Below, piece by piece: positions 17,919 to 60,200 of a stretch of 64,000 nt of DNA. This DNA comes from Tubulanus polymorphus. Taxonomy: Eukaryota; Animalia; Nemertea. The position numbers and the translations under genes are program-made. How positions within the stretch are numbered: position 1 is the stretch's first letter; every line of letters begins with the position of its first letter. The DNA lies in the NCBI RefSeq assembly GCF_964204645.1, contig NC_134031.1, positions 1,612,001-1,676,000 on the forward strand, given 5' to 3'. The notes beneath the pieces are model-generated. The model was not told the DNA's origin. It saw only the letters and a program-made list of their open reading frames with translations, and searched no databases.

Positions 17919-19221
17919 TCACGACTGTATAAATCGAATCCCGGTTTCGCAGATTGTGAATTTTCTCCCACACGTTTTTGAAACGCAGCAAAACGACTGA
18001 TCTTCGGAAGAATGTTCAAATCGAATTCGATCAGTAACGAATCTCGTCCACGCGTCGCACATATAATCCCACTCTACGCCGGTCTGATGTCGCTCTACGC
18101 CGGTCTGCTGTCGATTCGACGTTTCTTTCGTCGCTCGGTTTTGAAAAATTAAAGTTTTCGTCGCGAGCACCGTCAGGTTATACGATTCGACTAATCTCCG
18201 TAAAATATTCACGATTCTGCGCGTGTTAGCTTCCTGTACGGCGCGACAATCGCCGCCGTTCGAGCGATCTAGCCAATAGAACGCTCCGATACTGTCGACA
18301 AAAATACCGGCTATTTCCGGTCGACTGGAGATGAAAGATTCGATCGAAAGCAACGTTATCAATAATTGGCTGCTGTTCGCGCAGCGTAAAATATGTATAT
18401 TTTTCAGTGCGTTTTTAACGAAATTTTCCGTTTCCTCTTCGGAGAATTTTCGGCCGTCGCCGCTCGACGAAACTCGTTCGTTCACGAATGTCTCGATTAA
18501 CGTCGCGAGTTTTAAAATCGAAAATTGATAATCGGTATCGATGAAAACCAGTTCTACGCCGAGTCCGTATAGAGGAACACCGTTCCATTGTTCGGGTAAG
18601 ATTGCGCGCGTTATCAGATGTAAAAGCGTTAATGTTTTCGCGGTGCCCGCGTCTCCGGTCAGTTCGTACACGCAACCGGCCTCCGGACCACTTTCTCCAA
18701 ACAGATCGACGTGTAAACCTTTCAACGTCGATCGAGTCCCGAGCCTTGAAAAAAACTAAAACGAAAGAAGTTGAAATGGAAGAAGAATCGCACATCCAAT
18801 AGACAGAGGAATCACTCCATTGTCATAAACAGTACAGTGACAGCCAGGGCAGATCCAGCCGGTCAATTTGACTATATTCCTAGAAATTACTGCAGCTATG
18901 ATCTGCCAACGGCTACCAAGTATAGGTAGCAAGCATTGTACGTGTGAAGCTCATTAAAAGGGGGTTTGGGGTCCCCCCCCCAGGTCAGGAAACTTTTAAA
19001 AAATAACTTGTTTTCCAGAGAATACAGTACACAGTACAGTGGTCAGTGGAATTGGAATATAGCTTGTTGAATATAGCTTCCGTCCCTGCAGAAGAGAGTG
19101 AAACGGTGAATCCTGTCAAATTTAGAGTGGCTTTTCATTCTTTTTGATTCGTTCGAGGTAAAAACTGATCTGGAATTCGATTAACGTTACAATCAATGAT
19201 TACCTGAATTCCAGATTCCAT
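17919..19221 (-). CDS. XRCC2: DNA repair protein XRCC2 (RAD51 paralogue), 2 exons, 284 aa
   Basis: Exon 1 19221-19204 (MESGIQ|GT) joins exon 2 18755-17919 (FFSRLGTRSTLK...). Motifs: ELTGDAGTAKT (Walker A region), LPEQWNG..LYGLGVELVFIDTDYQF, VDSIGAFYWLDRSNGG. Confidence 0.93.
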
Positions 19222-20160
19222 TCTCGCTAAAATGAGTTTCAAGTTTATAACCTCGCTGTCAAATAATTTGCGGCTCAACGACCTTCAATTTGATTGATTT
19301 AGATTTCTAAACTCAAAAAACTCGATTTATTGAGGGCAGGTTCCTGCCCTGAGAAGCAAGGTGGCCTCTCAGGGCAGGTTCTGGAAAATCTGCAGAATGA
19401 CTCATATCAGATGAGCTTAGATAATCCTGGTTGCACCGCCTGTTTTTGAATAATACATTCAGAAAGCACTACGATATGTTCTTTGTATTCTCATCGGCTA
19501 TCATGTGTTCTAAATCCGCGCCTATCATGTCTTCTAATCGCCTATCATCGGTTCAGTCATAACGATTTCCATTTTAGCGAATCAACCTGTCACCTGAGGT
19601 CCCATCATGTCAGGTCAGGTCTTGGGCCCTGACATGACAGGTTCTGGAAACTCTGCAGACAGACCTAAATTCACTACTGCCGCCGAAACAGGTTAAACTG
19701 CAGCTATGCAGCATGTCCCGTGAGAGGACCTGGGGCCTGTGACGGGACAAGGATGTCCCGTCACAGGTCCCGATGGAAAATGAAAACTTTGCATTTCGTA
19801 GACGAAATGTCGAAAGAAACTGCACTGGAATGGTTACTATATACACTCAAAATAATGTTAAGAACATGTTAATAATCGAAATTTGTTCGTAATTTTATTA
19901 TTTCAGATCAATGATATCATCAAATCGAAACATTAAATGTAATAATGAAGATCGGATCAAGAGAAGACAGAACCACAGCTATCGAAATTTCAATTTTTAG
20001 TGTATAGACTGACTCATACTATCGAAAATAAAGTGAATGTATCTTGACAATTTTGGTGCCAATGGTGTTAGTAACCGTTTGTTAAGCGTTACACTGCAAA
20101 CAAAAGTAAAAGTGGAGGGGGCAACTTAATGGCCCTAGATCACTCTCGAGAGAGAATTCA

Positions 20161-20946
20161 AAGTGAGGGACCCGATTCAACACACTGTCCCGTGAGAAGA
20201 CCCGATTCAACTTACTGTCCCGTGAGAGGACCCGATTTCAAATACTGTCCCGTGAGAGGGCCCGATTTTAAATAATGTCCCGTGAGAGGACCCGATTCAA
20301 CACACTGTCCCGTGAGAGGGTCCGGTTTTAAATACTGTCCCGTGAGATGACCCGAATCAACTTGCTGTCCCGTGAGAGGACCCGGTTCAACACACTGTCC
20401 CGTGAGAGGGCCCGATTTTAAATAATGTCCCGTGAGAGGACCCGATTCAACACACTGTCACGTGAGAGGACCCGATTTTAAATACTGTCCCGTTAGAGGA
20501 CCCGGTTCAACACACTCTCCCGTGAGAGGACCTTATTTTAAATACTGTCCCGCGAAGGAACCCGATTTTAAATACTGTCCCGCGAGAGGGCCCGATTCAA
20601 CACACTGTCCCGTGAGAGGACCCGGTTTCAAATAATGTCCCGCGAGAGGGCCCGTATCAACACACTGTCCCGTGAGAGGACCCGATTTTAAATACTGTCC
20701 CGTGAGAAGACCCGAATCAACTTGCTGTCCCGTGAGAGGGCCCGGTTTCAAATAATGTCCCGTGAGAGGGCCCGATTCAACACACTGTCCCGTGAGAGGA
20801 CCCGATTTCTAATACTGTCCCGTGAGAGGACCCGAATCAACTTGCTGTCCCATGAGAGGACCCGGTTTCAAATAATGTCCCATGAGAGGACCCGATTCAA
20901 CACACTGTCCCGTGAGAGGACCCGATTCAACGCACTGTCCCGTGAG
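20161..20946 (+). repeat. Left subterminal array of 30-bp variant repeats, about 26 units
   Basis: Near-constant TGTCCCGTGAGAGG(A/G)CCC plus a 12-13 bp variable part (GATTCAACACAC, GATTTTAAATAC, GGTTTCAAATAA, GAATCAACTTGC). Confidence 0.95.
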
Positions 20947-21021
20947 CCAAACGTTGTTGAATGAGTATCTTTATGACAAATAGTGAATATTGGTGGAATA
21001 TTTCTCTATTTTGATTTATAG

Positions 21022-23355
21022 GTATCCGGCGAACGACAGGACCAAGACGACGACGTGGGCGATGATATTTCAAACGTGAGCCAAAAGTTGTTGCATGAAA
21101 ACTTCAATGTACAATATGAAAAAATGATCAAATATTGAAAAAAAATATATTTTACTGTATGAAATTACAGGTGTCCGCAGAAGACGGCTGGCTTAGATTG
21201 TATGACGACGTCTTTGACATACAAAATCTCACCGAGGCAGAACAGATTAAAATCAGTATGGAGTTATCACTCAAAGAGTCACATCTCCGTCAGAGTGCAG
21301 AGAAAAGGCTTCAATCTCTAGTTTCCGAATCCAATCTGAATATTGTGTCGGTCGCGGATGACGGAAGCTGCTTTTTTTGCAGCTGTTGTCGAACAATTGA
21401 GGCGAGAAAACGTTGACATAACAGCACATGAGCTACGATTAATGGCTGTTTCATACCTTTCTGAAAATAGGTATTGCGCTGTAAGTAAATTAAAAACCCA
21501 TTGATATATCAAGACAGCACTACAATAAATATTATATACACATATTATGGTTTGCTTCGCTGGATGGGGCTGATAAGGCCGACTTTCTGGAGTCTCATCT
21601 GACATGGCCATTATATCTTAATAAAATGAGACAAAGAACCACCTGGGCCGATGCTTTAGTTGTCCGTGCCACAGCTGACTGTTAAGGGAGACCAATGGTA
21701 CTATATACCAGTTCAGAGCAGTCAAACATCAATATGATAGATCCTGTCGAATGTAAAAATGCTGAACCCATCTTACTAGGGCATATTCAAGATATTCACT
21801 ACGTTGCCCTAGTAAAAAGGAGCTATATCCCAAGACGACGCGTGTCAGTCGAGAGTGTCAGAGGGTAACCTTGCGGCCTAACCCACGGAAGACGGTAAGT
21901 TGATAGTATATGCCACCCCTTCTGACTATTTGGCAAAAATAATACAGCCATCAGAAGCCTTGTTCATGTCAGCTAAGGGTTAATTAATTGAATTTCATAG
22001 CGTCAAAGTGACAGTTACCTCTGAGAACCGCAGAAAAAAAGAAGACGGGTTGTCGATAAAGGAATCTACTGCGTTTGCAAGAAACCAGATGATGGAAGGT
22101 AAAGCTTAATTATATCATATAAGATCAGGCTGTTGTTTTAAGATTCAGTCGTCATTGTCGAAAAAATCTTTTACCTTCACTTTCACTTTCACTTACCTTC
22201 ACTTTCAAAATTTTCTGCATTTGCATTTTAGGAAGTATTTGCAATGCGATGAATGTAGTGGGTGGTTCCATCCGAAATGTATTGGTCTGAACGAAGATAC
22301 TGTGGAGAAAATTGACTATAGATGCGAAACGTGTTTTGCAGGTAAGCGATGAACTAAAAAAATATTTTGATCAAATAAGCTATGCCAATATCCTTGCTAT
22401 GCTATCCTTTTATACAATGTGATTGCATTCTTTTTATATAGGTACCTAAACGATTCATTAAGAGTCAGGTATGGAATCCGATACATAATGCATACGAAAC
22501 TCTTGCCATTTTCCACTAGAAAGCAATGAATCAAATGTTTTTCTTTTCGCAGCTTGGCGCGGTTGAATATCACGTTTCTCGTATAATTAATGCCGAGATA
22601 AAAGACAAGAGGTAAATATTGTACCTTAGTAGAAATCTCGCCAGTTTGTTGAATTTTTCAAACTTTTGTTGATAATATACAATCTTTGGTTTCAGAAGGC
22701 CGGAATTCAGGAGACATTTGGACTTGATTAACAAAGACCATGAAAGAGCCGAAAAAGAACTGAAAGGATATGGCTATGGGCTTTTAACTGATGAGGTAAG
22801 CATTGATAACAGAAAATATGAAATGCGTACAAATAAATGAGCTTTCTTTCGATCATCGTAATATTCAATATTTTAAAGGGCCATGCATATCTCTATAGTG
22901 TAATGAAATCATACGTCAGCCCTACCTTTGCGGACAAATCGTAAGTATATACATGAATCAGACGTGAAGTTTTTTTACTATATTTCGAAATGATAATCAA
23001 TTCATTTCAATTACAGGAAACCATATTCAACTCGCTACATGACCCTCCGACAACATCATTCTAAAATGCTGAATTCAGTTTTTAAAGAAGGAAAGACGTA
23101 AGTTCATTCTCATCTTCTATTGCTAATTTCTTAAAAGAATTTCATCCATGTTATATTCATTGTATTAAAATATTTTTCAGGTCAGCAGTAACGTATGTTA
23201 ATGACGTTTTGCTTAAAGAGGCCATTTGTTTATTGGTGTCAACCTACCGAAATATCACATACAACGAGGCTGATATTCTTGGAAGAAGAACAGAGGCCAA
23301 AAAACTAAAAGATGTACAACGACTAATGTCCAAATACTTCTTGCCAGATTATTGA
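21022..23355 (+). pseudogene. 5'-truncated, disrupted transposon gene: UIM-like motif + OTU cysteine peptidase + NLS + PHD finger + PWWP3A/MUM1-C-like domain
   Basis: Exons about 21022-21075, 21171-21480, 21560-21894, 22001-22098, 22232-22341, 22442-22468, 22553-22611, 22696-22795, 22879-22940, 23017-23097 and 23181-23355. OTU: VADDGSCFF/AAVVEQL..HELRLMAVSYL..WADALVVRATAD..LGHIQDIHY. PHD: YCVCKKPDDGRKYLQCDECSGWFHPKCIG..YRCETC. Lesions: extra T in 21372-21378, lost acceptor near 21559, TAA at 21683-21685, TGA at 22022-22024, extra T near 22335. Confidence 0.85.
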
Positions 23356-24281
23356 AGAGTGAAGCAGTTTTCGATTCTTAAATGGGAGCTGTTGTAGATT
23401 GGTTATCCCGTAATGATTGTATTCTATGGAATAAGTTTTCTTGTTGCGATGAATTTTTGGATTGCTAGAGATGGTCTTTGCTGAATTTTGGTAATGGTTT
23501 TAATAGGAACCAGATTGTGACATGGATGTTTGAATTGTTGAAATGCTGTCCAGTCTTCTAATAGATGTGTGTAGTATATAGCCTATAGAAGTTCTTTGCA
23601 ATGATGTTTCAGAAGTTATGAATGATGGTTGAAAGATTCCAGCCGGGGCCGAGATGGTATTGTAAATTGTTGTTAATTAGTGGATCGTTTTATCTGCCTG
23701 GTTTGTTGTCGATGTCTTATGCTGTGTACTACTTCGTGTTAAATATTATTTTTGTATTGTGTCTTAACAGACAAGGGCGTTTTCTGTCATCCAATATGAA
23801 ATGATAATTTTTGGTTCAAATTATAATACATCTATCCGGAATTGGGAAATATTGCTGAAGAGTAAAAGGGGAAATATGAAAGAATTGATGATAACCTTTT
23901 TTACCGTGTAAAGTAATAATTAATAATTAAATGATAAGTAATAATTTAGTTTGGCGACAAAGATTTAGTAATCTAAAATGCTAAATTGATTTCGAATTCC
24001 AACGTATGTTGTTTATGTTCAAATATGAATAATATAGTCTTCGAATGTAATATGGTTTACAGATTTTGATAAATAAATAACTGAACATAATTTCACATAT
24101 ATACGATTTGTTTTATGTTTTAAGGGGACATAGCCAATTTGGCTTTTAGTACGTACATCCAGCCATCATTGTACGCATATTGTTGAAATAATAATTTCTT
24201 GTTGTAATTTTTATATATGGCAAAAATGCATTATCATTATGAGCATGGGACTCAACATTGACAAAGTGGACAATTTCATTA

Positions 24282-26050
24282 GTCCTCTCACGGGACAGTG
24301 TGTTGAACCGAGTCCTCTCACGTGACATTCTTTGAAACCAGGTCCTCTCACGGAACAGTAAGTTGATTCGGGTCCTCTCACGGGACAGTGTGTTGAATCG
24401 GGTCCTCTCACGGGACAGTATGTTGAATCGGGTCCTCTCACGGGACATTATTTAAAAGCGGGCCCTCTCACGGGACAGTGTGTTGAATCGGGTCCTCTCA
24501 CGGGACAGAGTGTTGAATCGGGCCCTCTCACGTGACATTATTTGAAACCAGGTCCTCTCACGGGACAGTGTGTTGAACCGAGTCCTCTCACGTGACATTC
24601 TTTGAAACCAGGTCCTCTCACGGGACAGTAAGTTGATTCGGGTCCTCTCACGGGACAGTGTGTTGAATCGGGTCCTCTCACGGGACAGTATGTTGAATCG
24701 GGTCCTCTCACGGGACAGTATTTAAAATAGGGTCCACTTACGGGACAGTGTGTTGAATCGGGTCCTCTCACGGGACAGTGTGTTGAACCGGGTCCTCTCA
24801 CGGGACAGTATTTAAAATCGGGTTCCTTCGCGGGACAGTATTTAAAATAGGGTCCTCTCACGGGACAGTGTGTTGATTCGGGTCCTCTCACGGGACAGTG
24901 TGTTGAATCGGGTCCTCTCACGGGACAGTATTTAAAATAGGGTCCTCTAACGGGACAGTATTTAAAATCGGGTCCTCTCACGGGACAGTGTGTTGAACCG
25001 GGTCCTCTCATGTGACATTATTTGAAACCAGGTCCTCTCACGGAACAGTAAGTTGATCCGGGTCCTCTCACGGGACATTATTTGAAACCAGGTCCTCTCA
25101 CGGGACAGTGTGTTGAATCGGGTCCTCTCACGGGACAGTATTTAAAATCGGGTTCCTTCGCGGGACAGTATTTAAAATAGGGTCCTCTCGCGGGACAGTG
25201 TGTTGAATCGGGTCCTCTCACGGGACAGTATTTAAAATCGGGTTCCTTCGCGGGACAGTATTTAAAATAGGGTCCTCTCACGGGACAGTGTGTTGAACCG
25301 GGTCCTCTCACGGGACAGTATTTAAAATCGGGTCCTCTCACGGGACAGTATTTAAAATAGGGTCCTCTCACGGGACAGTGTGTTGAATCGGGTCCTCTCA
25401 CGGGACAGTATTTAAAATAGGGTCCTCTAACGAGACAGTATTCAAAATCGGGTCCTCTCACGGGACAGTGTGTTGAATCGGGCCCTCTCACGTGACATTA
25501 TTTGAAACCAGGTCCTCTCACGGGACAGTAAGTTGATTCGGGTCCTCTCACGGGACAGTGTGTTGAATCGGGTCCTCTCACGGGACAGTATTTAAAATCG
25601 GGTTCCTTCGCGGGACAGTATTTAAAATAGGGCCCTCTCACGGACAGTGTGTTGAATCGGGTCCTCTCACGGGACAGTATTTAAAATCGGGTTCCTTCGC
25701 GGGACAGTATTTAAAATAGGGTCCTCTCACGGGACAGTGTGTTGAATCGGGTCCTCTCACGGACAGTATTTAAAATCGGGTTCCTTCGCGGGACAGTATT
25801 TAAAATAGGGTCCTCTCACGGGACAGTGTGTTGAATCGGGTCCTCTCACGGGACAGTATTTAAAATCGGGTTCCTTCGCGGGACAGTATTTAAAATAGGG
25901 TCCTCTAACGGGGCAGTATTCAAAATCGGGTCCTCTCACGGAACAGTGTGTTTAATCGGGTCCTCTCACGGGACAGTATTTAAAATCGGGTCCTCTCACG
26001 GGACATTGTGTTGAATCGGGACCTCTCACGGGACGGTAACTTGAATCGCG
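24282..26050 (-). repeat. Right subterminal array of the same 30-bp variant repeats, inverted, about 59 units
   Basis: GGGTCCTCTCACGGGACA plus a variable 12-mer; reverse complement of the left array. Confidence 0.95.
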
Positions 26051-26795
26051 GGTTCCCGGCCGTTGTAAAATCCTGCGTGAAAAACGTGCATTCATATCCC
26101 CTATTGTCCCCCTGGCCCTGCAGTAAATTAGAATTTTTCGGTAGGCCCTTATGTATTTATAAATGAAATCAAAATGGAAAATGTAATAATTACAATCGAT
26201 AGTTGAATTTATTTATTCATAATCGTTATAGGCAGAATACATAAGAATATATAAGGGACTCGAAACCGCTAGCATTGGAATCGACGTTTCATGTAAGAAT
26301 TCTACATTTGTCCCGTGAGAGGACCCATGTCCCGTCACAGGCCCGGGTCCTCTCACGGGACGCTGCAGTTTAACTCATATGCTGCCGCCTCGACGTCCAC
26401 ACCGGTACGAAGTTGCAGCTCTGTGCAGTGAGATTGATAATCCTCGTCCAGAGTAAGTGAAATTTGAGAGAACAACTTCAACAACACTAGAGTCTTTTCG
26501 ACTTAACTCGCTTCCAGACCTAATCCTTTTTCACTCGCTGTGTTACACTTACACAGTTAGTTACAGCTACTTTCTTTTTTCTAACCGAACGCCGCAGGAC
26601 TGCTGTGGGCCTGGCCCCTCCTCGGGCCTGCCTGCCTCATCCTCACTTGCCAGCTCTTAGTACACGCAGTATATACAGAGCGCCGTGGTGAACACACCAT
26701 CTTATCCCAGCTACCGAGGCCGCGTACCTTAATTAAACTGCCCAGGATTGTTTAAGACGGCCCCAGGCAGTCTAATCTAGCCAATCAGGGTGTTT

Positions 26796-31659: not shown

Positions 31660-36530
<4,871 letters not shown>

Positions 36531-47000: not shown

Positions 47001-50000
47001 CGCCATTTTTTTTATGCGATCGATCCAGACACTTACCGACATAAAAACCGATCAATGCACAGACGATTTAATCACCCAGTTACCAGGGTTGCCTTCTTTT
47101 CATATTTATTGCGTAGAATACAAGCTGATCCAATACGAGCGATCACGTTGTTTCATTTGCCTTTTCCATATTTATCTATATTTTTGAATGCATAATATAA
47201 GAATGAACTACAAGGGCTGAATTGCGATCGGTTTCCACGTTAAATACATTCCCTAAAGTGCTTCATTCTTGACGAAGTCTATATCACTCTCCCCCATATC
47301 CCGGGTACGATTCATTATTTTATGGTTGCGATTTTTGCGTGAACTTTTTTTGCCATCGGAATATTTTAGAAGTCGAATAACAGAGAATCGAAATATTGTA
47401 TCATGGTCGGCGACTGTGGTGTTTCGCGCCATCGGGAATTCTTTTTGAATTAAAAGTTTTAAAAACTTCGAGAATAAGTTTTATAGTATGAAATATACGT
47501 GGCTCGATAAAACTGACACTTGGTTTCCTCAATCTTTTTAAGTGCCAACTTTCACGTCAGCGAGGTTTATCTTGGCCTACGTCGGGTTCTTCGGCTTCTT
47601 CTGGCTCTACGCGTTACGGTTCAACATGAGTGTCGGTATTGTTTGTATGGTGAAGAATCCACCGAAAAAGTTGGACGTTACGACGAACGCGACCAGCGAA
47701 CCGACTTCCGGAAATAATACGTACGATAGGGCACTAACGAATGAGGAAAAATGCGAAGCGGAAGGACTGGGTTCGAATAACAGATCTGCGGTAAGTATGC
47801 TCATTTACCTGATGAAGATACTATGTGCATTTTAGTAGCATAAACTCGTATTTCTATTTAAATCAAGTAAACCTACAAACGAGCACCTGTAAGCCTATTA
47901 GTAAACATAACCATTTATTTGTTTAAATCATTTAGGTAATAACTGCATAGTTCTGGCATATTCTTTATTGATGGCAATCTTCCAATACGGTGTTTTAAGT
48001 ACAGATTGGAATGTTTAAAATTAGGAATTTCCACAAGTATTTTGACCGGCAGAATGCTCGCTTATCTGAATTTCAGTTATAAAAGAATGAAAGGTTACGA
48101 GTAAAATTAAGTCATATTTTTCTTCGCATTTTATGCTCAAAATACTTGTTCAATATGATTTATAAATGATGCTGAAAAACACCTTTACTAGGCCCGTAGT
48201 TGAGTCCAATTTCAATGGTTACTCATTTATTACTTACAGCAATCGATTTTCAAATCTTTTCAAATTGTTTTTATTTGTATATTATTCAGGAAGGAGAATT
48301 TGAGTGGGATCGCCCGACTCAAGGTATGGTACTATCGGCGTTCTTCTGGGGTTATATCATAACGCAGGTGCCCGGTGGATGGTTGGCTAATAAATACGGA
48401 GGCAAACTCGTACTCGGATCCGGCATGGCACTGACCGCCCTGGCCACATTACTACTACCGGTCGCCGCCAGGGGGAGCGTTCACGCCGTCATATTCTTAC
48501 GCGTTGTAATGGGTTTCGGAACGGTAAGTCGGCCATTGAGATTATTACAACATTATTTTTGACGGATTTTTGTAATTTAGTTGATCTGTTGTGATAGGGT
48601 ACGGCATTCCCAGCAATGCACGGCTTATGGGCTAGATGGGCGCCTTCATTTGAAAAGACCAAGCTAATGACGCTCTGTTATTCCGGTAGGTGGATTAAGA
48701 AAAGCTAATCCTCTATTTGATCGGTAATGTTAGTTTGAGTCTGATATTGTCAGGATATTTCGTGTTCTTTTCCAGGTACAATGATTGGTAATATATTCAC
48801 ATTCTTTGTCTCCGGATTGTTGTGCGAATACGGATTCGATGGCGGATGGCCTTCCATATTCTATCTCATGGGTAAGAACTATTTCTCGCCAAAGAAAATA
48901 ATTTCAGGAGCGGATCTAGAAATTGGAAGATGCTCTAATAGAAAAGGAAGAGCATTTCTCGGATAAAGGCCACAAACAGTGTTCCACCATTAGATAATTT
49001 GAAGAAATCCATCCAGAAAGATGCACTTTCCAGAAAGGGAAACCTTTATGAGGAGACAGCAGTTGCCCAACTAGATCCGCTCCTGACTTCAGTCATTACG
49101 ATAATACATACATAAGATTTGGGCGTCGAACTAAAGTTACTTGTTATGAAAGAAAGAGAAGTACGGAAAATGTTCCAATATATTTGTGTCTCTATGACAG
49201 GTATCGGCACAGCTATTTGGCTGCTGTTTTGGATATTCCTCGTGTATGACACACCTAGTGTACATCCTCGTATCAGTGACGAGGAGAAGGAATATATACT
49301 TCAATCTGTCGGCGCCAACACCTTCAAAGATGCTCAGGTATATATGTAAATACATGTCTTAATACAGCTTACATCGCCGAGTGTATAAATTTGATCTGTG
49401 TGTTTTTCATCTACGTATTTTGATTTTCAGAATGTAAAAACTCCGTGGCTGTCGTTCATCAAATCGCCCCCTCTATTGGCTATCGTTGTAGCCCACGTCT
49501 GCAACAACTGGGGCAACTACACAATGATGACCAGTTTGCCGACCTACATGAAAGACGTACTTAAATTCAACATGAAGTCGGTGAGTTGTTATAGAATAGA
49601 AGTAGAAATACAAAATATTGAAAAAATACGAAGTTGGACGCCTGTTGAAGTTAAAAGATAATTTATATCCTTACGTCATAAGTTGCAAGAAGTTTTCCTA
49701 AATACCTATTCATCGTTCGGAAACATTTATTTCATGTTATTTGATTTCAGAACGGATTGTTCACTGCTCTCCCTTATATGGGAATGTTCGTGGCATCTAT
49801 CGGAGGTGGACAGGTATCTGATATTCTGAGAGCTCGCGGTGTTACGACCACAGTCGTCCGAAAAACCGTGCAATGCATCGGTAAGTAAATACCGCGATAA
49901 ACATAAATCAGATACATTACGCCGAATTCAGGAAGAAATGATGATTAACTAGAATGGATAGAAAGCATGAATGGAATGATTACAAGCTGTCTGAATTAGG

Positions 50001-50904
50001 AGAATGATATAGAATAGTCTGGGGAACTATACATATTAGTGTTTTCTATTGGGACATATGGATATTTTCAGTAAATCTGCATTTGTCAAACGACGTTCGT
50101 TTTCCGCTTAATTCGAGTCTACATCGAATCTATATATTCGGATGTTCTTGTATTTTCATAGCATTCGTGTTGCCAGCCGCGTTTACGATCGCTACTGGTT
50201 TCTTGGATTGCACACAGCGAGGTTTAGCGGTCGCGTTTCTGACTATAGCCGTCACCACTAGCGCTCTAAACCGATCTGGATACATCGTTAATCACGTTGA
50301 TATTGCTCCCAGGTAAATATCGGATTGTGTCCACAGCACTCTGATCCTCGCGAACTAGACGTCTGATGTCTTGTTGTATTTTATAGGTTCGCTGGTGTTT
50401 TGTTTGGCTTAACAAATACATTCGCTACAGTTCCTGGTATGTTGGCTCCACTCGCTGTTGGTCAACTCACGAAAGATGTAAGTCGATGCATTATATCGAA
50501 TACCGAATTTCTCATTTTGTTTACCGAGTAAAGCACATTTTTCAAACATTGAATTCAATCTTCCCGGCTTTGGTTGGGTTCGAATTTCAGTTGTGAAACA
50601 CTGGGTTCTGTATAGAATTATTGATGCTCAATTTTCTCAAATGTTACAGCGTTCTCGAGCCAGTTGGCAGATCGTATTCTATCTATGCGGCGGTTTCTAT
50701 CTGTTCGGAGCGCTCGTCTATACGAAATTCGCGAGCGGCGTCGAACAGGAGTGGGCTAAAGCCAAACCAGAAGCGCAGGCCGAGGACGGCGAGGCGTTGA
50801 CCGCAATTGACGAGAAACCGAAAGAAAACGAGGCCGAAAAAGATCAGAACGAAGTCGAAGTAAAGACTCCGTTACAATCCGAGAAAGATACCACAGAGTT
50901 GTAA
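44059..50904 (+). CDS. SLC17/sialin-like MFS anion transporter, paralogue A; two candidate first coding exons
   Basis: Exon 2 from 47543 ([35 protein letters not shown]), [62 protein letters not shown]. First exon 44059-44089 or 46596-46656, both phase 1. Confidence 0.92.
46095..46326 (+). repeat. About 230-bp non-coding block duplicated at 47877-48107
   Basis: AACGAGCACCTGTAAGCCTATTAGTAAACATAACC ... CTTATCTGAATTTCAGTTATAAAAGAA is near-identical in both places. Confidence 0.9.
48905..49085. mobile_element. 181-bp MITE with perfect 15-bp terminal inverted repeat CAGGAGCGGATCTAG
   Basis: The TIR pair is seen directly; related ends occur at about 51975-52234, 18845, 12120 and 4866. No TSD is discernible. 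Confidence 0.65.
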
Positions 50905-53800
50905 CTGGCGGATCATCAAAAAGTATCGTAGGAATCACGCAGCCCTTCCTGCTGTAGAGAAGAGAATGTAGAGACCAGTTTATATAGAATATTGTAGACG
51001 ACAGAAAGCTTGTAGACGTCAGTTTAATTCCTACCAAAGTCGTGTGTATTTACGATCTCATTTCGAACAACATTAATGAATTTGTATTTACTGTAAAATT
51101 GAGTTATTGAGAAAACGAAAGCTCAACAGATGATAATAATATGTAGCTACGATGGCCAAATCTGTAATATTATAATGTCCAGTATTTTATAGGCTGCTTT
51201 GTAATTATTCATCTATATATGTATATGCACTGACACTATACTTTGCTGATGATAATTATCGGGATTTGCTGCAATTTTTTATGTGCTCTCATTGTTAGCT
51301 GTTATATATCATATATTCATATATATAATTCATATATATATATCAATGTTATGGAACCACTGAAGCTCAATTCATTTCGCAATTTCGGTTTCGTTTTTTC
51401 AGTTTTTTTCAATCCATATCTCATTGTTGATGTTTAATCGGTCGCGAGACGCTGCAAACTCAACGGTTAAATGTTAAATGTATTTTTGTTTTGTTTTCAA
51501 TTGGCAAATCGCCGTAACCTGCATTTCCGAGAAGTTCTCAAAAAAAAAATTATTCTCATTTTTATTTTACGAAAAATTATAGTTAATCCAATATGGCCAG
51601 TCGGCTGTCAGTAAAGTTTTTTTTTTGTTTATCCTATTACAGTTTACCTGCTAATGTTTAATTAATTGTATGTTAAATAGTTATTGCTACTTATTCTAAA
51701 AGACTGTTGCCTATAATATGTACTTGTCTGACTATCTAATCATTGTTAATCTCAATCTGCTTTGTGTGATAGAACATGTGTTCCCATATATATCAAAGGC
51801 TGTGGTGTGCGCTTAGACCGTAGTTTCCGTCCTTTGAACACAGAAAGATCTGTATAATGCAGTCACACTATCGATACTATCCGGCTGATCGTGAAAGCAA
51901 CGTGAACAAATTACGTTTTATCATATTTTTCCATACATCCATAATATCTATTGGTTCAAATCCTCACGCGAGCTACAGGGTGGATCCAGGGGGCAGACTT
52001 TGACAGGAGCACAAAGAAATGATAAGGGCGTATATACTGAAAAAAGGGGAAATTCTTAAGTATTCACGCAGCAAAACAAGGGATGGAAGATTCAGTGCAT
52101 TGTCATACAATTTATAGGCACTTGAGGGGCATTTAAGGGAATATAAGCTAAATCTTGCGCTGCTGTCTGCTGTTTTATTAGTTCCGGGTGGAAAAAGTGC
52201 TCTGAAAAATATTGTGCTGTCCGGATCCGCCCCCAAGGCCGTACTTGGCAGATGGGGTCTTCCCTGGCTTCTTCGCCACCGACTGCTAGACGGGTTAGCG
52301 GTATCTCTACCGGACCGGTTGGCGGTCTCGAGTACACATTTTCTTTCAGAATCTGACGATTATTTTCCTGATTAATCTATAACTACGTCTGTATCTCAGC
52401 TATTGTCATCTTGAAGCTAACGCTCTGTCGAATTTGAACGAAAGCATTTTTACTTTTTATTCTGAACGCATTTCAAATATTCTAACAGATCTAACAGGAT
52501 CATTACGGAAGCTTTTTCATGTATATATTATATACATAATATATACAAAACCATAATCTCAACGTTTTAAAACATATGTAATATCATTATTTTTGCATTT
52601 AGCATTATTTTTAGTGTAAACAATAAGTTTATCAAATAGGCATAAAGGAGATTAATAAACAAGAGGGCAAATTTTTTTACCAAATTTAGCGTATGGTCTT
52701 CCAGAACTTTAACAAAGCAGCATATAATTCTCGATATTATCTTGTGGTGAATTGTTTCGGAGACTAATGCAGTCTTCATGCGGATGGATTTTACTTAAAA
52801 AGATTTGAATTCAAAACGAAAAATCGCAGCAGATAATATGATGGCGGTCTGGGGGTCTTGGTAAAGTATGAACACTTGGAAATCAAATCGCGTACAGAAG
52901 ATGGGCGCATTTACACGTGTTCACAGGGATGAAACCTTCGTTAAATTAGTCTCCCCTTCCCCTATACCCGAATACCGCGACTTACCTGTCGGTTTAAAGT
53001 ATAGTTGAATAGATGAATGTTTTAAGCATTTTACTATTTCTGATTTTTGAACGTAAAGAAGGTATCTACAATGAATAGTGTTGTTATTTGTGTGAAATTA
53101 TAATGAGTTGATATATCTATGATGAGAAGTGAAGCCTTACGCATGACATAGACTTACGTGTGATACTTATATTTATGAATGGATATCAAAATCGAGGCTG
53201 TAATGATTTGTATGATATTGTTTGGAATAAATGTACCTCGCTGTTTAGATTAAATGAACCGCGTTTCTTTCTTTTTTTTAAGCAAAAATTTATTATTTCT
53301 ATTTCTGGAAATATCGATGAAACTTACATCTTAATTCATAGCATAATATAATGTATAACTATTATACGCGAAAATCACACGAAACTAAAGACCGTAACAT
53401 AACTGACACAACACAATACACTCTATCAAATAAAGCCACACATTTCTAATCTATCAATAGCTATGTAACGATTATCAATAGTTTTGGCTAATTTACTTAA
53501 TCGTTTATAAAATCGAATATCTTACGAAAAATAAAATCGTCTATCTCGTCATGGTGATAGGGTTGACGATATAAATTGCGAAAACATATTATATAAAATC
53601 AATATCAATGATGAATGTTTTATCAGCTTATGACGTGAGACATTACATGTTACAATGTCGTTACCATGTTAGAGTCCATTACTGCTATGCTGATAGAGAA
53701 TACGACTTCATAATTTCGCTGAACTCAATGATTTAATTTCCGTCCAGTTGTTCTAAATCTATCTCATAGATAGAATGGCAGTAATAGAGATAAGAACAAA

Positions 53801-56673
53801 TTATAAATCTTGGGTATCGGTTCGCTGCATCGGGAATGAATCTTGTTCTTTATCTTTTGATTTGTTTCGCTTCTTTTTCTTGTCGCCGTCGTCGGTCAAG
53901 GCAACGGTTCCTTCTTCGTCATCGTTCGGTTCGGGCTTCGCTTTGGCCCACTCCTGTTCCACTCCGCTCGCGAATATTGTATACACGATAGCGCCGAGCA
54001 GGTAGAAACCACCACAGATATAGAATACAATCTGCCAACTGGATCTAGATCTCTGAAACATGGGAAAAAACGATTATTGTAATTTAACAAAATTCTTGTA
54101 CGTTAAGGATAGAGGTGGTTATTTCCCTCATCTGGGGTACGCTTACATCTTTAGTGAGCTGGCCGACGGCTAGTGGGGCCAACATCCCAGATACTGTCGC
54201 AAATGTGTTGGTAACCCCGAATAAAACACCGGCAAATCTGAATAGAAATAGATGTTAAATTAGATAGACACATAGATGACGACTCGAAAGATCGTCAGAA
54301 ATGGATCGATATGCAAATTATGGCCACCATTAGATCGATATGCAAATTTATGGCATCCATCTTTGTGGCTTAATGTTTCAGTAAGTAATCTCGTAGCTCG
54401 AGTATAGAGGTATCAATCACCTGGGAGCTATATCAACATGATTGACAATATATCCGGACCGGTTCAGGGCACTAGTCGTTACCGCTATGGTCAATAGGGC
54501 GACCGCGGCGCCTCGTCTTGTGCAGTCCAAAAACCCGGTACCAATCGTAAACAAAGCGGGCAGGACAAATGCTGAAACGATTATAGATTTGATGTGGGCA
54601 TGCTTGCAAAGCGTAAATGTTGGTAAAACGAATGAGTAAGCAGTTTCGCGTTCGATTTACCTACCTATGAATTGTACGCCTTTTCTGACTTTCGTAGTTG
54701 AGACGCCATGAGCTCTTAGGATATCAGCTACCTGACCGCCAAATATAGCTGCTACAAACATACCCATATATGGCAGTGCTGTGTAGAGACCATTCTGTAA
54801 TGAATTCAGAAAATATACACATGCACCCTGGGCGTTTACTGGCATTTTAACCGGTTTATGGGGAGCTGAGGGCATAACTCACCGACTTCATGTTGAATTT
54901 AAGTACATCTTTCATATAAATTGGTAAACTGGTCATCATTGTGTAGTTGCCCCAGTTGTTGCAGACGTGGGCGACAACGATAGCCAATAGAGGGGGCGAT
55001 TTGACGAACGACAGCCACGGAGTTTTCACTTTCGTCGCATCTTTGAATGTATTCTGTCCAATCGAAGCCAAAATGTAATCTTTTTCCTTTTTACTGATAC
55101 GCGGGTGTTCGCGCGGGAAGTTATAAACCAGTGCTATCCAAAATATCAGCCAAATCGCTGTCCCACCGCCTTAAAAACAACAAAGAGCAATGATAGGGTT
55201 TTGTTGTTATCATAAATAGAGGATAGTCGAGAAAGTAGTTACCCATGACGTAGAATATGGAAGGCCAACCACCGGCGAATCCGTATTCACACAACAATCC
55301 AGAGACGAAAAATGTAAATATATTACCAATCATTGTACCTGGATAGAAAAATGATACAAATACATCATGAGCCGAATCGTAAATAAATCTAGGCTTATAA
55401 TGTCTTTTCTTGAGGTCATTTTCCAAATATCAGTAGATGAATGCAAGATCCAAGAACCATCAGTGCACAACTACTGGAACATAGGAAGCGGGTCACCTAG
55501 TAAAATGTAGAAGTGATGCACCGACGTCACACTTATCGTTCAACGTGAAATGGCAATGAACGACTGTGACTATTTACTTTACAGCCAACTGCGGTCCAAT
55601 ATGACGCACTGTGGACGTCAGGTGCATAACCTCTATAGCTATGAATGTTTGGACCTGTGTCGTCATTTTTATTACCGACCTGAATAACAGAATGTCATTA
55701 GTTTCGTTTTCTCAAAGGTTGGCGCCCATCTGGCCCACAGACCGTGCATAGCCGGAAAGGCGACTCCCTGATATAAGAGAAAGCATCAATAAGATAATGA
55801 AATGGAAGTATGAAGCGCGTGAACGTGTACTAGACTTACCGTGCCAATTCCCATGACAACGCGCAGGAAAATGACCCCATAGACGTGACCTCTCGCAGCG
55901 ACTGGGATGAGTAAAGTAGCAAGAGCTGTTATACCCATACCCGATCCGAGAATGATCTTAGCACCGTATTTATTAGCCAACCATCCACCGGGAACCTGTG
56001 TGAGGATATAACCCCAGAAGAACGATGATAGTACCATTCCTTGCGTGGGACGATCCCAATCAAATTCTCCTTCCTGCAAATATATTATTGCATCTTTGTC
56101 AGGATGAGGCAATAACGTTGGTATTTTGAAATACAGTTGTTTCAAAAATGGACTTGGCATTTAGAACACATTCTGATCATGTATGCATATGCTGCAGAGC
56201 TAAAATATGTTGCCTTGAACAACGATGAATGCTAAACCCCTCGACAGATGCCTTCCCCTTGAGCTTCAATGTATAGTACTTATACTTACTAATGTCCTAT
56301 TAGAACGATCTTGGTCTTCCATGGCGCAGACGGGTTCACCGCTATCATCTGGAGTTGTTACATTGTAAGATGTGCTGTTGTTGAGAGATGAGTTCAATGA
56401 CGCCTTCGATGGAATCTTCACCATACAAACAATACCGACACTCATGTTGAACCGTAACGCGTAGAGCCAGAAGAAGCCGAAGAAACCGACGTAGGCCAAG
56501 ATAAACCTCGCTGACGTGAAAGTTGGTACTACCATAGATAAAACAGTATAGGTGTATACAAGGTGTCGATCAAGGACGAAGACAAACAGATACGAGATGG
56601 ATCATTGATACTTACCTCCATCATCTCTGCAAAAGAATTCTCCGAAATTCCCGCAACATTTCTTCTTGGCCAT
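53801..56673 (-). CDS. SLC17/sialin-like transporter, paralogue B
   Basis: First exon 56673-56616 ([19 protein letters not shown], phase 1), then the same exon series as paralogue A minus one intron; stop at 53801. Confidence 0.92.
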
Positions 56674-57224
56674 TTCGACCTTTTTTGTCACGTCCTCGAA
56701 AAATCCTAGGCAGAATTATAACTGTTACTGTGTAATGATTTGCACCAGACGTGCTGACTATGGCATATGTTTTCGTATTAGGTGCCTTTACGTGGTCGTC
56801 ATTTGTTTGACTATTATATATGTATATTTATGGGAGTTATATGAAACTGGTTTTCAAGCTATCAGACCTAATTCGAAAACCTGTTATACTGGAAAAAATT
56901 TGCGTAATTTAGTCGTATACACTAAATACCTAGAAATACTGCAAGATAAAAACCCAACAGAACGTGTTCTAAAGACAACAATGCAGGCTGTTTTTTATTG
57001 TTTTCCCCTTATATTCATGCAATACGAAATGAAAATCATGGAGGAAAACAAAAATAATCCTATTACTATAGGGTACCTATGTACCGTTGTAGTGTGACGA
57101 ATTAAGTTGGTTTTAGGAGGCAAATTTTCTTCTCCAATGCAGCATTCTTTATCGGGTGAACACGTTCATTGGCAAGGCACCTTTAGTAAACATAAGCAAG
57201 GGATAATGCATAATAGATTGATGG

Positions 57225-60200
57225 ATGGGCCAGAGGATGGGTAATGGCGCTGATTGGTCCAAATTGTACTCATGTATCCACAATCTCAGTAAAGCCTTTG
57301 CTTCTTTTGTTTTACAGTCCCGACGGTCCTATCATGTCGTTACATGATGGCTTATGTGGGATTTTTCGGATTCATGTGGGTATATGCGCTGAGATTTAAC
57401 ATCAGTGTAGCCATCGTCTGCATGTCCAAGGTACCAAACGACACGATGAAAATCGAGGTCAACACAACAGCGCCCCCTGAGGAAGATTGTGGAAATGGAG
57501 GCAACGAAACTGTAAAAAGAATTGTAAGATAACGTTATCTTTCTAAATTATCTGTTAATCAATTATTAATTAAACGAATTCATTTATACCTTGAATATAT
57601 TTATGTTTTTAAGGAGGGAGAGTTCGAATGGAGTCGCCAGTTACAGGGAGTGGTGCTTTCGTCATTTTTCTGGGGGTATATTGTAACTCAAGTTCCAGGT
57701 GGATGGCTGGCGGCTAGGTATGGCGGTAAGATTGTATTTGGAGCTGGGATGTTGTTGACATCGGTGGCCACGTTACTGATTCCAGTAGGAGCTCGTGGAC
57801 ACGTTGGTGTTGTGATCTTCCTTCGGATCCTGATGGGCGCTGGCACGGTTAGTCCTAATACGCATTTCATACAAAAACTCCTTAATTAGTAAAACGAGTT
57901 CTAAGAAAACCAAATTTATTTTCTAGGGTGTTGTTTTCCCAGCTATGCATGGATTATGGGCTCGTTGGGCTCCTGCCCTCGAACGGACCAAGTTGATCAC
58001 TTTGACCTATGCAGGTATGTTGCACTATCCTATGTTGATGACTTGTTAAGTTCATTCGATAGATGTTTGGCAGATTGATTCATGTAAATATGCAAATTTC
58101 AATATTTTATAGGTACAATGATTGGTAATATATTTACATTTTTCGTCTCTGGATTGTTGTGTGAATACGGATTCGCCGGTGGTTGGCCTTCCATATTCTA
58201 CATCATGGGTATGTAAATTCAGTGCTCTTCTTGTGTGAACTTTCCTCTATTTATCAATATATTTCGATTTCTCATCTATTTGACAGGTATCGCTAGTGCC
58301 GTGTGGCTGATATTGTGGGGTGTGTTTGTATTCGACAATCCTTCCAAACATCCTCGTATCACCGATACCGAAAAGGACTACATTCTATCGTCTATTGGCA
58401 CCAACACCTTCAAGGACAGCACGGTAATAAATCAAACAAAAAACAAACAAATACATCGATTGCAGATTCTTAGATACAAATTGGGATATCATTTCAATAC
58501 TTCAATAAGCAAAGCGTAAATTGTACAAATTTCTGTGTTTCAGAAAATGAAGACTCCTTGGTTGGCGTTCTGTAAATCACTTCCCCTTTGGGCTATCATA
58601 GTCGGTCACGTGTGTAACAACTGGGCCAACTATACTTTGATGACCAGTCTGCCTAGTTACATGAAAGACGTGCTCAAATTCAACATGAAATCGGTAAATT
58701 CAGATTTAAAGTTAAAAGTGGCCACTATTGATGATCGTATAAAATCAACGCAACATTTGTTGCCGTTTCTGAATATGTACATGAACCATCTTGCTGAAAC
58801 ATCTTTCAGAATGGATTCTTCTCCGCGCTACCCTACATGGGTATGTTTGTTGCATCAATAGGCGGCGGTCAAGTAGCCGATATTCTCAGGGCTCGCGGGA
58901 TTCCCACGACTAAAGTTCGTAAAGGCGTTCAATTCATTGGTGAGAGACTTTATTTCCAATAGTTGTAACATTACTCTAATTCTTCTCTTTTGACCAAACT
59001 TTATTTCGAACTGGATTGACGATGTTACTTACAACCTTGAATTTTAGCGTTCGTGGTGCCCTCTATATTCGTGATCGCTGTCGGTTTCCTGGACTGTACC
59101 CAACGCATGTTAGCAGTAGCATTCTTGACCATCGCTGTAACTACTACCGCCCTCTGTCGGTCGGGTTACATCGTTAACCACGTTGATATCGCACCGAGGT
59201 AGGTCAATTTCCCGATATTAAGATTTTATTTGACGAAACTTTTTTTTTTCGTATACGTTGTTTAGAATGCACAGCGTCTGTTTTTCAGATATGCTGGAAT
59301 ATTGTTCGGTATCACGAATACATTTGCTACATTGCCGGGAATGATCGCTCCAGTTGTGGTCGGTCAAATTACTCAAGACGTAAGTCTCCTTTCTACCATT
59401 TACAATATTCATAAAACTTCACACTTAGAAATATTCATGACGAGCCATTTATAGCGCTAAGTCCAACTCAGAGCACCATTGTCTCTTAAGCTAGAGTTCG
59501 CTCTAGGATCCCTACCCTAACCATGCATCACTCATATCTTCGTGGGGAGAAGTAACATCTGAACAACTCTACTTAATGCTTAGGGGTCATCTATCAGTCT
59601 CTTAAGCAAGAGTTCGCTCTAGGATCCCTACTCTAACCATGCATCACTCATATCTTCGTGGGGAGAAGTAACATCTGAACAACTGTACTTAATGCTTAGG
59701 CGTCATCTATCAGTCTCTTAAGCAAGAGTTCGCTCTAGGATCCCTACTCTAACCATGCATCACTCATATCTTCGTGGGGAGAAGTAACATCTGAACAACT
59801 CTACTTAATGCTTAGGCGTCATCTATCAGGCCAGGTAACCACTTACCTACTGAGTGTAGAGAGGTTATGAGGATGAGAGTCTTGTCCCGAGGACACCATA
59901 CGATTATATACAACCTGGCTTCCCTTCACCCAGTCCTGGAAGTGATTGTTGTATGTCGCTTTACGACCCTGTGGTACACCAGACACTGAAGGCTTCCCAT
60001 GAGTCGAACGCTCTATTAACCACTCGCCCGCACCGCAATTCAAACCTGTATTTCGTTTTTCCAGCGATCAAGAGCCTCGTGGCAGATTGTGTTTTTCATC
60101 TGTGCCGGCTTCTATCTGTTCGGAGCAGTGTTTTACACTATATTCGCCAGCGGGGTCGAACAGGAGTGGGCCAAAGCGCCCCCTAGTGACGACCAAAACA

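Follow-up and report, generated by a model that had tools for sequence, protein, structure and literature searches.

KDZ (Kyakuja-Dileera-Zisupton) transposons are poorly characterised; their founding studies are said to be those of Bohne et al. 2012 and Iyer 2014. Zisupton elements carry short inverted repeats that are set inside non-inverted ends. Zisupton is the sole well-characterised KDZ group and the only one with well-defined ends, and its insertions are flanked by 8-bp target-site duplications (TSDs) (PMC12730594). The elements are multi-exonic and known from invertebrates (PMC9297572), and their transposase bears a C-terminal ubiquitin-like-modifier peptidase (PMC12730594, PMC9297572, PMC12062965). 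Here, we analyzed a window of 64,000 nucleotides (NC_134031.1, positions 1,612,001 to 1,676,000; G000:C7 in our numbering) from the intron-rich, 268-Mb genome of the nemertean Tubulanus polymorphus and describe within it a 6697-bp transposable element that defines family A. We conclude, with a probability of roughly 85%, that family A is a young non-autonomous derivative of a KDZ-type element that arose by internal deletion. In this genome, a number of very young families have exact ends, one element is full-length, and an end motif is conserved; together, these provide a ready test of the sites that a KDZ transposase binds and cuts. Being non-autonomous, the window element is valuable mainly as a pointer to a lineage that combines KDZ with OTU.

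Foldback elements (Drosophila FB, Galileo, and the sea-urchin TU) have long inverted arms that are built of short tandem units, vary in length between copies, and begin their inversion at the first base; FB and Galileo are placed in the MULE and P groups. Family A likewise has inverted arrays of short units that differ in length between copies, whereas its arrays are internal and lie behind unique end segments of 480 bp and 330 bp. Dada elements have no terminal inverted repeats but short subterminal ones, and they target small-RNA genes with fixed TSDs, for which 6 bp has been proposed in Dada-U1 (PMC3706591). Family A shares the short subterminal inverted repeats and the lack of terminal ones; however, its TSDs are 8 bp long and different at each copy. 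On Ginger1 transposases, OTU, Ulp1, and PHD are interchangeable C-terminal tails, while Mutator carries Ulp1 and Helitron carries OTU (PMC2836005). The lineage described here resembles these systems in its swappable OTU, Ulp1, and PHD modules at the C terminus of transposon proteins but differs from them in its transposase and its ends. Given this precedent, a swap of Ulp1 for OTU is unsurprising in kind, and the pattern of ubiquitin or SUMO proteases on transposases is extended to an OTU-PHD tail on KDZ.

Termini, target-site duplications, and genomic copies of family A

The family A element occupies window positions 19685-26381, between two exact copies of CTGCCGCC (Table 1); the computed chance of a single exact 8-bp flank match is 2e-5. 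While the outermost 7 bp are unlike each other (GAAACAG on the left versus CATATGA, read on the reverse strand, on the right), the bases that follow form a 13-bp inverted repeat, GTTAAACTGCAGC, with 13/13 identity between the two ends. The inverted match extends inward with gaps, pairing 19707-19752 with 26325-26367 at 89% identity. The original prediction had described the exact duplication, the seven unlike end bases, and the inverted repeat at equal offset, and all three were borne out. It had also suggested checking whether copies elsewhere share the GAAACAG/CATATG ends and carry copy-specific 8-bp TSDs. End searches of the genome returned at least about 25 left ends and at least about 29 right ends, and at least 16 copies retained both ends, each with its own 8-bp duplication (14 perfect, 2 at 7/8). 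The termini GAAACAG...CATATG were present in nearly all of the paired copies, with one beginning with T rather than G, and the target sites of the 16 copies were 71% A+T, with G or C as the first base in 12.

The copies range from about 0.3 to 13.8 kb in length, and gene exons are present in the eight largest. Two long copies were read completely, and their 3.3-kb interior shows 98.6-99.9% identity with that of the window copy; size differences among long copies reflect the length of the arrays or a nested long terminal repeat (LTR) retrotransposon. Family A is a young DNA transposon family. The nested retrotransposon, at G000:C2 about 9098774-9106421, is 7.65 kb long with a 5-bp TSD; its 1269-bp LTRs are 100% identical, and gag, zinc knuckle, and protease domains are present, although no long reverse transcriptase frame was noticed in it.

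Two other classifications were considered and rejected. TTAA, the target site of piggyBac, Kolobok, and Sola3, lies inside the inverted repeat, the copies run 8 bp beyond it, and their TSDs are variable 8-bp sequences; since almost every family A copy has identical termini, TTAA is not the target site. Membership in hAT, P, MULE, or Merlin was set aside because the first 7 bp are not inverted and because related elements carry KDZ-like exons.

The gene remnant and a full-length relative

Protein-domain searches, run exon by exon, reveal that the window element contains a gene remnant with about 10 exons, the last five junctions of which match database model P0001. The PHD finger is recognized above the cut-off (PF00628, E 1.2e-8), and the UIM-like helix is weak (E 0.17 in the window exon). 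The OTU pieces of the window copy have no Pfam match, while partial PF02338 matches were obtained in family B, in family D, and in an older family A copy on C8 (single-exon E values of 1e-4 to 1e-2, short of the cut-off). We call this domain an OTU because of its D-G-S-C and H-Y motifs together with these PF02338 matches. No Ulp1 match was detected in the exons scanned, which agrees with the original proposal of an OTU in place of Ulp1. Likewise, no KDZ or CxC4 match was found in any family A copy examined. A resemblance of the last exon to the C terminus of PWWP3A/MUM1 (PF20886, E 0.037) was not reproduced in families B, C, D, and E and was treated as chance. A homolog search with the last-exon profile returned essentially only a model of the same gene and one 43-aa fragment, and an Atlas search with P0001 residues 61-218 gave no neighbours.

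Related families came to light through genome searches that used the last exon and the OTU exon; the relatives are designated families B, C, D, and E. Family D is represented by a full-length element of 10.6 kb on the minus strand of G000:C11 (about 10328686-10339306). This element is flanked by an 8-bp TSD (AAAGTTTT) and has GA...ATG as its termini; the inverted repeat begins at base 10, an offset of 9 bp. The N-terminal part of its gene encodes C2H2/BED-like fingers, and a further exon matches CxC4 (PF18717, E 9e-6). A 248-aa exon contains the motifs GG..CPH, DRFHE, and NSQ.QEQ, which are kept in four database homologs with 42-45% identity to this exon; we take these motifs to be KDZ-type. 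In the Atlas, the exon lies next to a chordate SAP-domain cluster (0.97) and to a cluster that carries PF18758 (KDZ) (0.94). Among the family D exons, scanned singly and with the small exons covered in part, there was no match to SWIM, SAP, F-box, or CxC7. Judged by these similarities, the predicted family D transposase is a KDZ, and a distant one because PF18758 itself does not match it. Phase-1 splice sites join the KDZ-like exon in frame to a repeat linker, which is a 30-bp coding repeat, and then to an exon that encodes the UIM-like helix and the OTU, with the PHD finger downstream. Nine exon pieces of the window match family D in the same order with 41-62% identity, and the window gene corresponds to the 3' half of such a gene, each exon having its ortholog in the family D tail.

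In the young family A copies checked, the OTU has been disabled by two lesions. The frameshift in the T run (21372-21378) was found in 4/4 young copies checked and the in-frame stop (21683-21685) in 3/3, with seven family A copies being consistent with the stop; both are absent from the older C8 copy. Since the young copies checked share the frameshift and the stop, the recent spread came after the gene broke, and family A must therefore be moved in trans. Across 186 codons, the window and C8 copies differ by 9 replacement changes and a single silent one, which, in these small numbers, gives no sign of constraint, and the C8 copy has lost one codon in the D-G-x-C motif. The OTU-PHD tail of the window is now a relic, and its decay shows that an element can move without a UIM-OTU-PHD tail in cis. 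Because no transposase is encoded and the OTU gene is broken in young copies, we regard family A as non-autonomous.

Families B, C, and E

Family B, at locus L066, is 6.5 kb long with TSD AATTACTT, and its inverted repeat begins at base 8, the same 7-bp offset as in family A. Its copies carry the same gene tail as family A, with pieces of the KDZ exon directly upstream of the tail, and at least 123 candidate right ends are present in the genome. At least 10 near-identical copies make up family C (L064:3262-9165), which retains the last exon alone and has a 59-bp array of its own end motif. Family E was found at G000:C4 about 1320500-1334400 and at C6 about 16128000-16136000. It contains a KDZ exon with a 622-aa open frame, which scores equally in the two copies, and two PHD fingers. 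A distant version of the last exon (hhalign probability 96%) is present as well, and 59-bp arrays lie inverted at the two ends.

Foldback arrays and the subterminal motif

The long inverted 30-bp arrays that had been reported inside the ends are present as 26 and 59 units in opposite orientation, 80-86% complementary to each other. Each unit consists of about 19 conserved bases, which correspond to the motif of the end clusters, and a variable 11-bp spacer. The motif core, CGT[CG]A[CG]A[AG]GNCC, occupies left-end positions 35 and 75 in family A versus 36 and 77 in family D and is found again in the arrays of both; it was not found in family B, in family C, or in the remaining 57 kb of the window. 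Among the family A copies read, the numbers of left and right units vary (about 26/59, 60/113, and 25/33). A coding role of the left array was rejected for the window copy, as it contains stops in all three frames. The arrays are most simply explained as tandem amplifications of the putative binding motif that were altered by slippage or unequal exchange, and they may supply extra transposase-binding sites. As a family trait, the foldback arrays proposed in the original prediction are thus present but not peculiar to family A: family E has inverted arrays as well, and families B, C, and D have arrays of their own end motifs.

Table 1. Features of the family A element, in window coordinates
Feature	Position	Strand	Remarks
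Left 8-bp TSD, CTGCCGCC	19677..19684	+	Exact copy at other flank
Left terminus, GAAACAG, 7 bp, not inverted	19685..19691	+	GA start common to families B, C, and D
Left subterminal inverted repeat, 13 bp	19692..19704	+	Begins at element base 8
Three subterminal motif copies (forward, reverse, forward)	19714..19772		Putative transposase-binding sites
Left array, about 26 x 30 bp (26.2 units)	20163..20946	+	Unit is subterminal motif plus spacer
54-bp acidic linker mini-exon	21022..21075	+	Exon-plus-intron unit repeated in longer copies
UIM-like helix and OTU N-half (D-G-S-C), single exon	21171..21480	+	3' border approximate; frameshift in T run 21372-21378
OTU C-half (W...H-Y)	21551..21865	+	Borders approximate; in-frame stop 21683-21685
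Two exons: basic stretch and first PHD cysteines, then remaining PHD finger	22001..22341	+	PF00628
Five exons, unnamed C-terminal domain	22553..23355	+	Last exon also present in families B, C, D, and E; stop codon 23353-23355
Right array, 59 x 30 bp	24282..26048	-	Inverted relative to left array
Right-end cluster of subterminal motifs	26309..26361		Same motif as arrays
Right subterminal inverted repeat, 13 bp	26362..26374	-	13/13 match to left
Right terminus, TCATATG, 7 bp, not inverted	26375..26381	+	ATG end common to families B and D
Right 8-bp TSD, CTGCCGCC	26382..26389	+	Exact copy at other flank

Origin and mobilization of family A

Family A and its relatives share with Zisupton the 8-bp TSD (seen in the 16 family A copies), inverted repeats near but not at the ends (beginning at base 8 in both A and B and at base 10 in D), a multi-exon gene, and, on the transposase of the lineage, a C-terminal ubiquitin-like-modifier peptidase. 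They differ from it in carrying an OTU with a UIM-like helix and a PHD finger rather than Ulp1, in the CxC4 and C2H2/BED-like N terminus of family D, in the long inverted tandem arrays, and in the lack of a transposase in the window element; the KDZ-like transposase resides in family D, the relative with the same tail and end plan. Overall, family A behaves like a non-autonomous Zisupton; because it has neither a transposase nor Ulp1, it is not a strict Zisupton of the fish type. The Zisupton/KDZ assignment made originally holds through the full-length family D element and the KDZ remnant in family B, with the correction that the window element itself lacks a transposase and is non-autonomous. 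In the literature without the founding papers, Repbase, and Dfam, we found no published description of an OTU on a KDZ transposase or of foldback arrays in the KDZ group.

Several observations weigh against a KDZ origin. The PF18758 profile gives no match to the family D transposase exon, and CxC4 of family D reaches 26.0 bits where the cut-off is 26.9. The 13-bp inverted repeat differs between families A and D in sequence and in offset (7 bp versus 9 bp), so family D may not be the mobiliser. In addition, no family A copy with KDZ exons was present among 36 KDZ-exon and 18 last-exon genome matches, and the direct parent of family A is therefore not shown. The candidates considered as autonomous partner were all rejected: the extra length of a 9.6-kb copy consists of longer arrays only and that of the 13.8-kb copy of the nested retrotransposon, a LINE-like stretch interrupts the left array of the C8 copy and the 9.9 kb read there contain no KDZ, and a match at C5:12.49 Mb is a short fragment. 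About 30 left ends of family D occur in the genome at 90-100% identity, and because these are numerous and near-identical, the family has been recently active and is a candidate mobiliser.

Which element supplies the transposase is a separate matter. An autonomous parent of the A type could persist in another haplotype, in an unassembled region, or in other individuals, with family D uninvolved, an arrangement that is compatible with a KDZ origin and to which we give a little less than an even chance. The unlike inverted repeats of A and D speak for it, as does the limited identity of their tail proteins (41-62%), whereas the failure to find a single A-type KDZ copy in the genome matches and the recent activity of family D speak against it. 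In contrast, it is highly improbable that a different foldback superfamily with 8-bp TSDs (hAT, P/Galileo, or MULE/FB) took up the 3' part of a KDZ gene as cargo and is moved by its own kind of transposase. The element does lack a transposase, and those groups include elements with 8-bp TSDs and with foldback arrays; however, the GA...ATG termini, the offset inverted repeat, and the 8-bp TSD are common to families D and B, which bear KDZ-like exons, the end motif stands at the same positions in A and D, and the inversion does not begin at base 1. We also considered that family A began as a helper that expressed the UIM-OTU-PHD protein alone and aided KDZ transposition in trans, with the gene being lost later. 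An ATG at 20129 and a phase-0 GTGAGA donor in the first array unit lie upstream of the mini-exon, the older C8 copy is open through both lesions and has its array directly before the tail too, and family B keeps the tail with most of the transposase gone. Against this stand the two disabling lesions common to the young copies checked, the excess of replacement changes between the window and C8 copies, the codon missing from D-G-x-C in the C8 copy, and the reduction of family C to the last exon, and we consider such a beginning very unlikely.

For the favored origin of family A as a deletion derivative of a KDZ-type element, we infer cut-and-paste movement by a KDZ transposase acting in trans. 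A transposase from another element, either family D or an unassembled or lost A-type parent, would bind CGT[CG]A[CG]A[AG]GNCC together with the offset inverted repeat, cut at the fixed GA...ATG ends, and insert the element with an 8-bp stagger into AT-rich sites. In the parent, the UIM-OTU-PHD tail would probably serve to read chromatin and to strip ubiquitin from the transposase or at the target site, as the UIM, OTU, and PHD domain families would predict ubiquitin binding, deubiquitination, and histone reading, respectively. A broader proposal, which we advance tentatively and hold to be doubtful, is that families A to E belong to one KDZ lineage of invertebrates that has not been described before. 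Its elements would be marked by left ends starting with GA, by inverted repeats set at an offset, by deubiquitinase tails that can be exchanged, and by arrays made from each family's binding motif, and its transposase would tend to insert right next to resident KDZ ends by binding their end motifs.

Adjacent ends of different families

A family B right end, 92% identical to that of L066, occupies window positions 19542-19671 and stops 13 bp left of the family A element; no matching left end was found in the window. Elsewhere, a family A right end at G000:C6:16136038 (L044) abuts an apparent family E left end, and a family D left end abuts a family C left end at C4:872760 (L064:3261). These are 3 cases in roughly 80 ends viewed, compared with about 0.01 expected (a rough figure based on 2000 ends and a 20-bp window), and they were noticed post hoc. 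Such adjacency is not general, as it was seen in 1 of about 32 family D ends. It is possible that KDZ-type families prefer to insert next to existing ends; tandem insertion through a shared site preference is a known phenomenon (bioRxiv 10.1101/158386). A further end-like motif at window 19340-19408 (a hairpin and CTGCAG, then AATGAC TCATATC) has the spacing of the A and B ends, and its partner end was not found.

Other features of the window

A single-exon Rad51-family frame, which we take to be XRCC2-like, is present on the minus strand (17922-18755; PF08423, E 2e-8), with the transposon cluster about 0.6-0.9 kb upstream. At 31967-32470 there is a RING-finger exon, presumably COP1-like, followed by a 33-bp tandem array at 32106-32457. 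The region 47500-60200 is a patchwork of direct and inverted similar segments with 74-99% identity, which suggests local duplicated and inverted gene copies.

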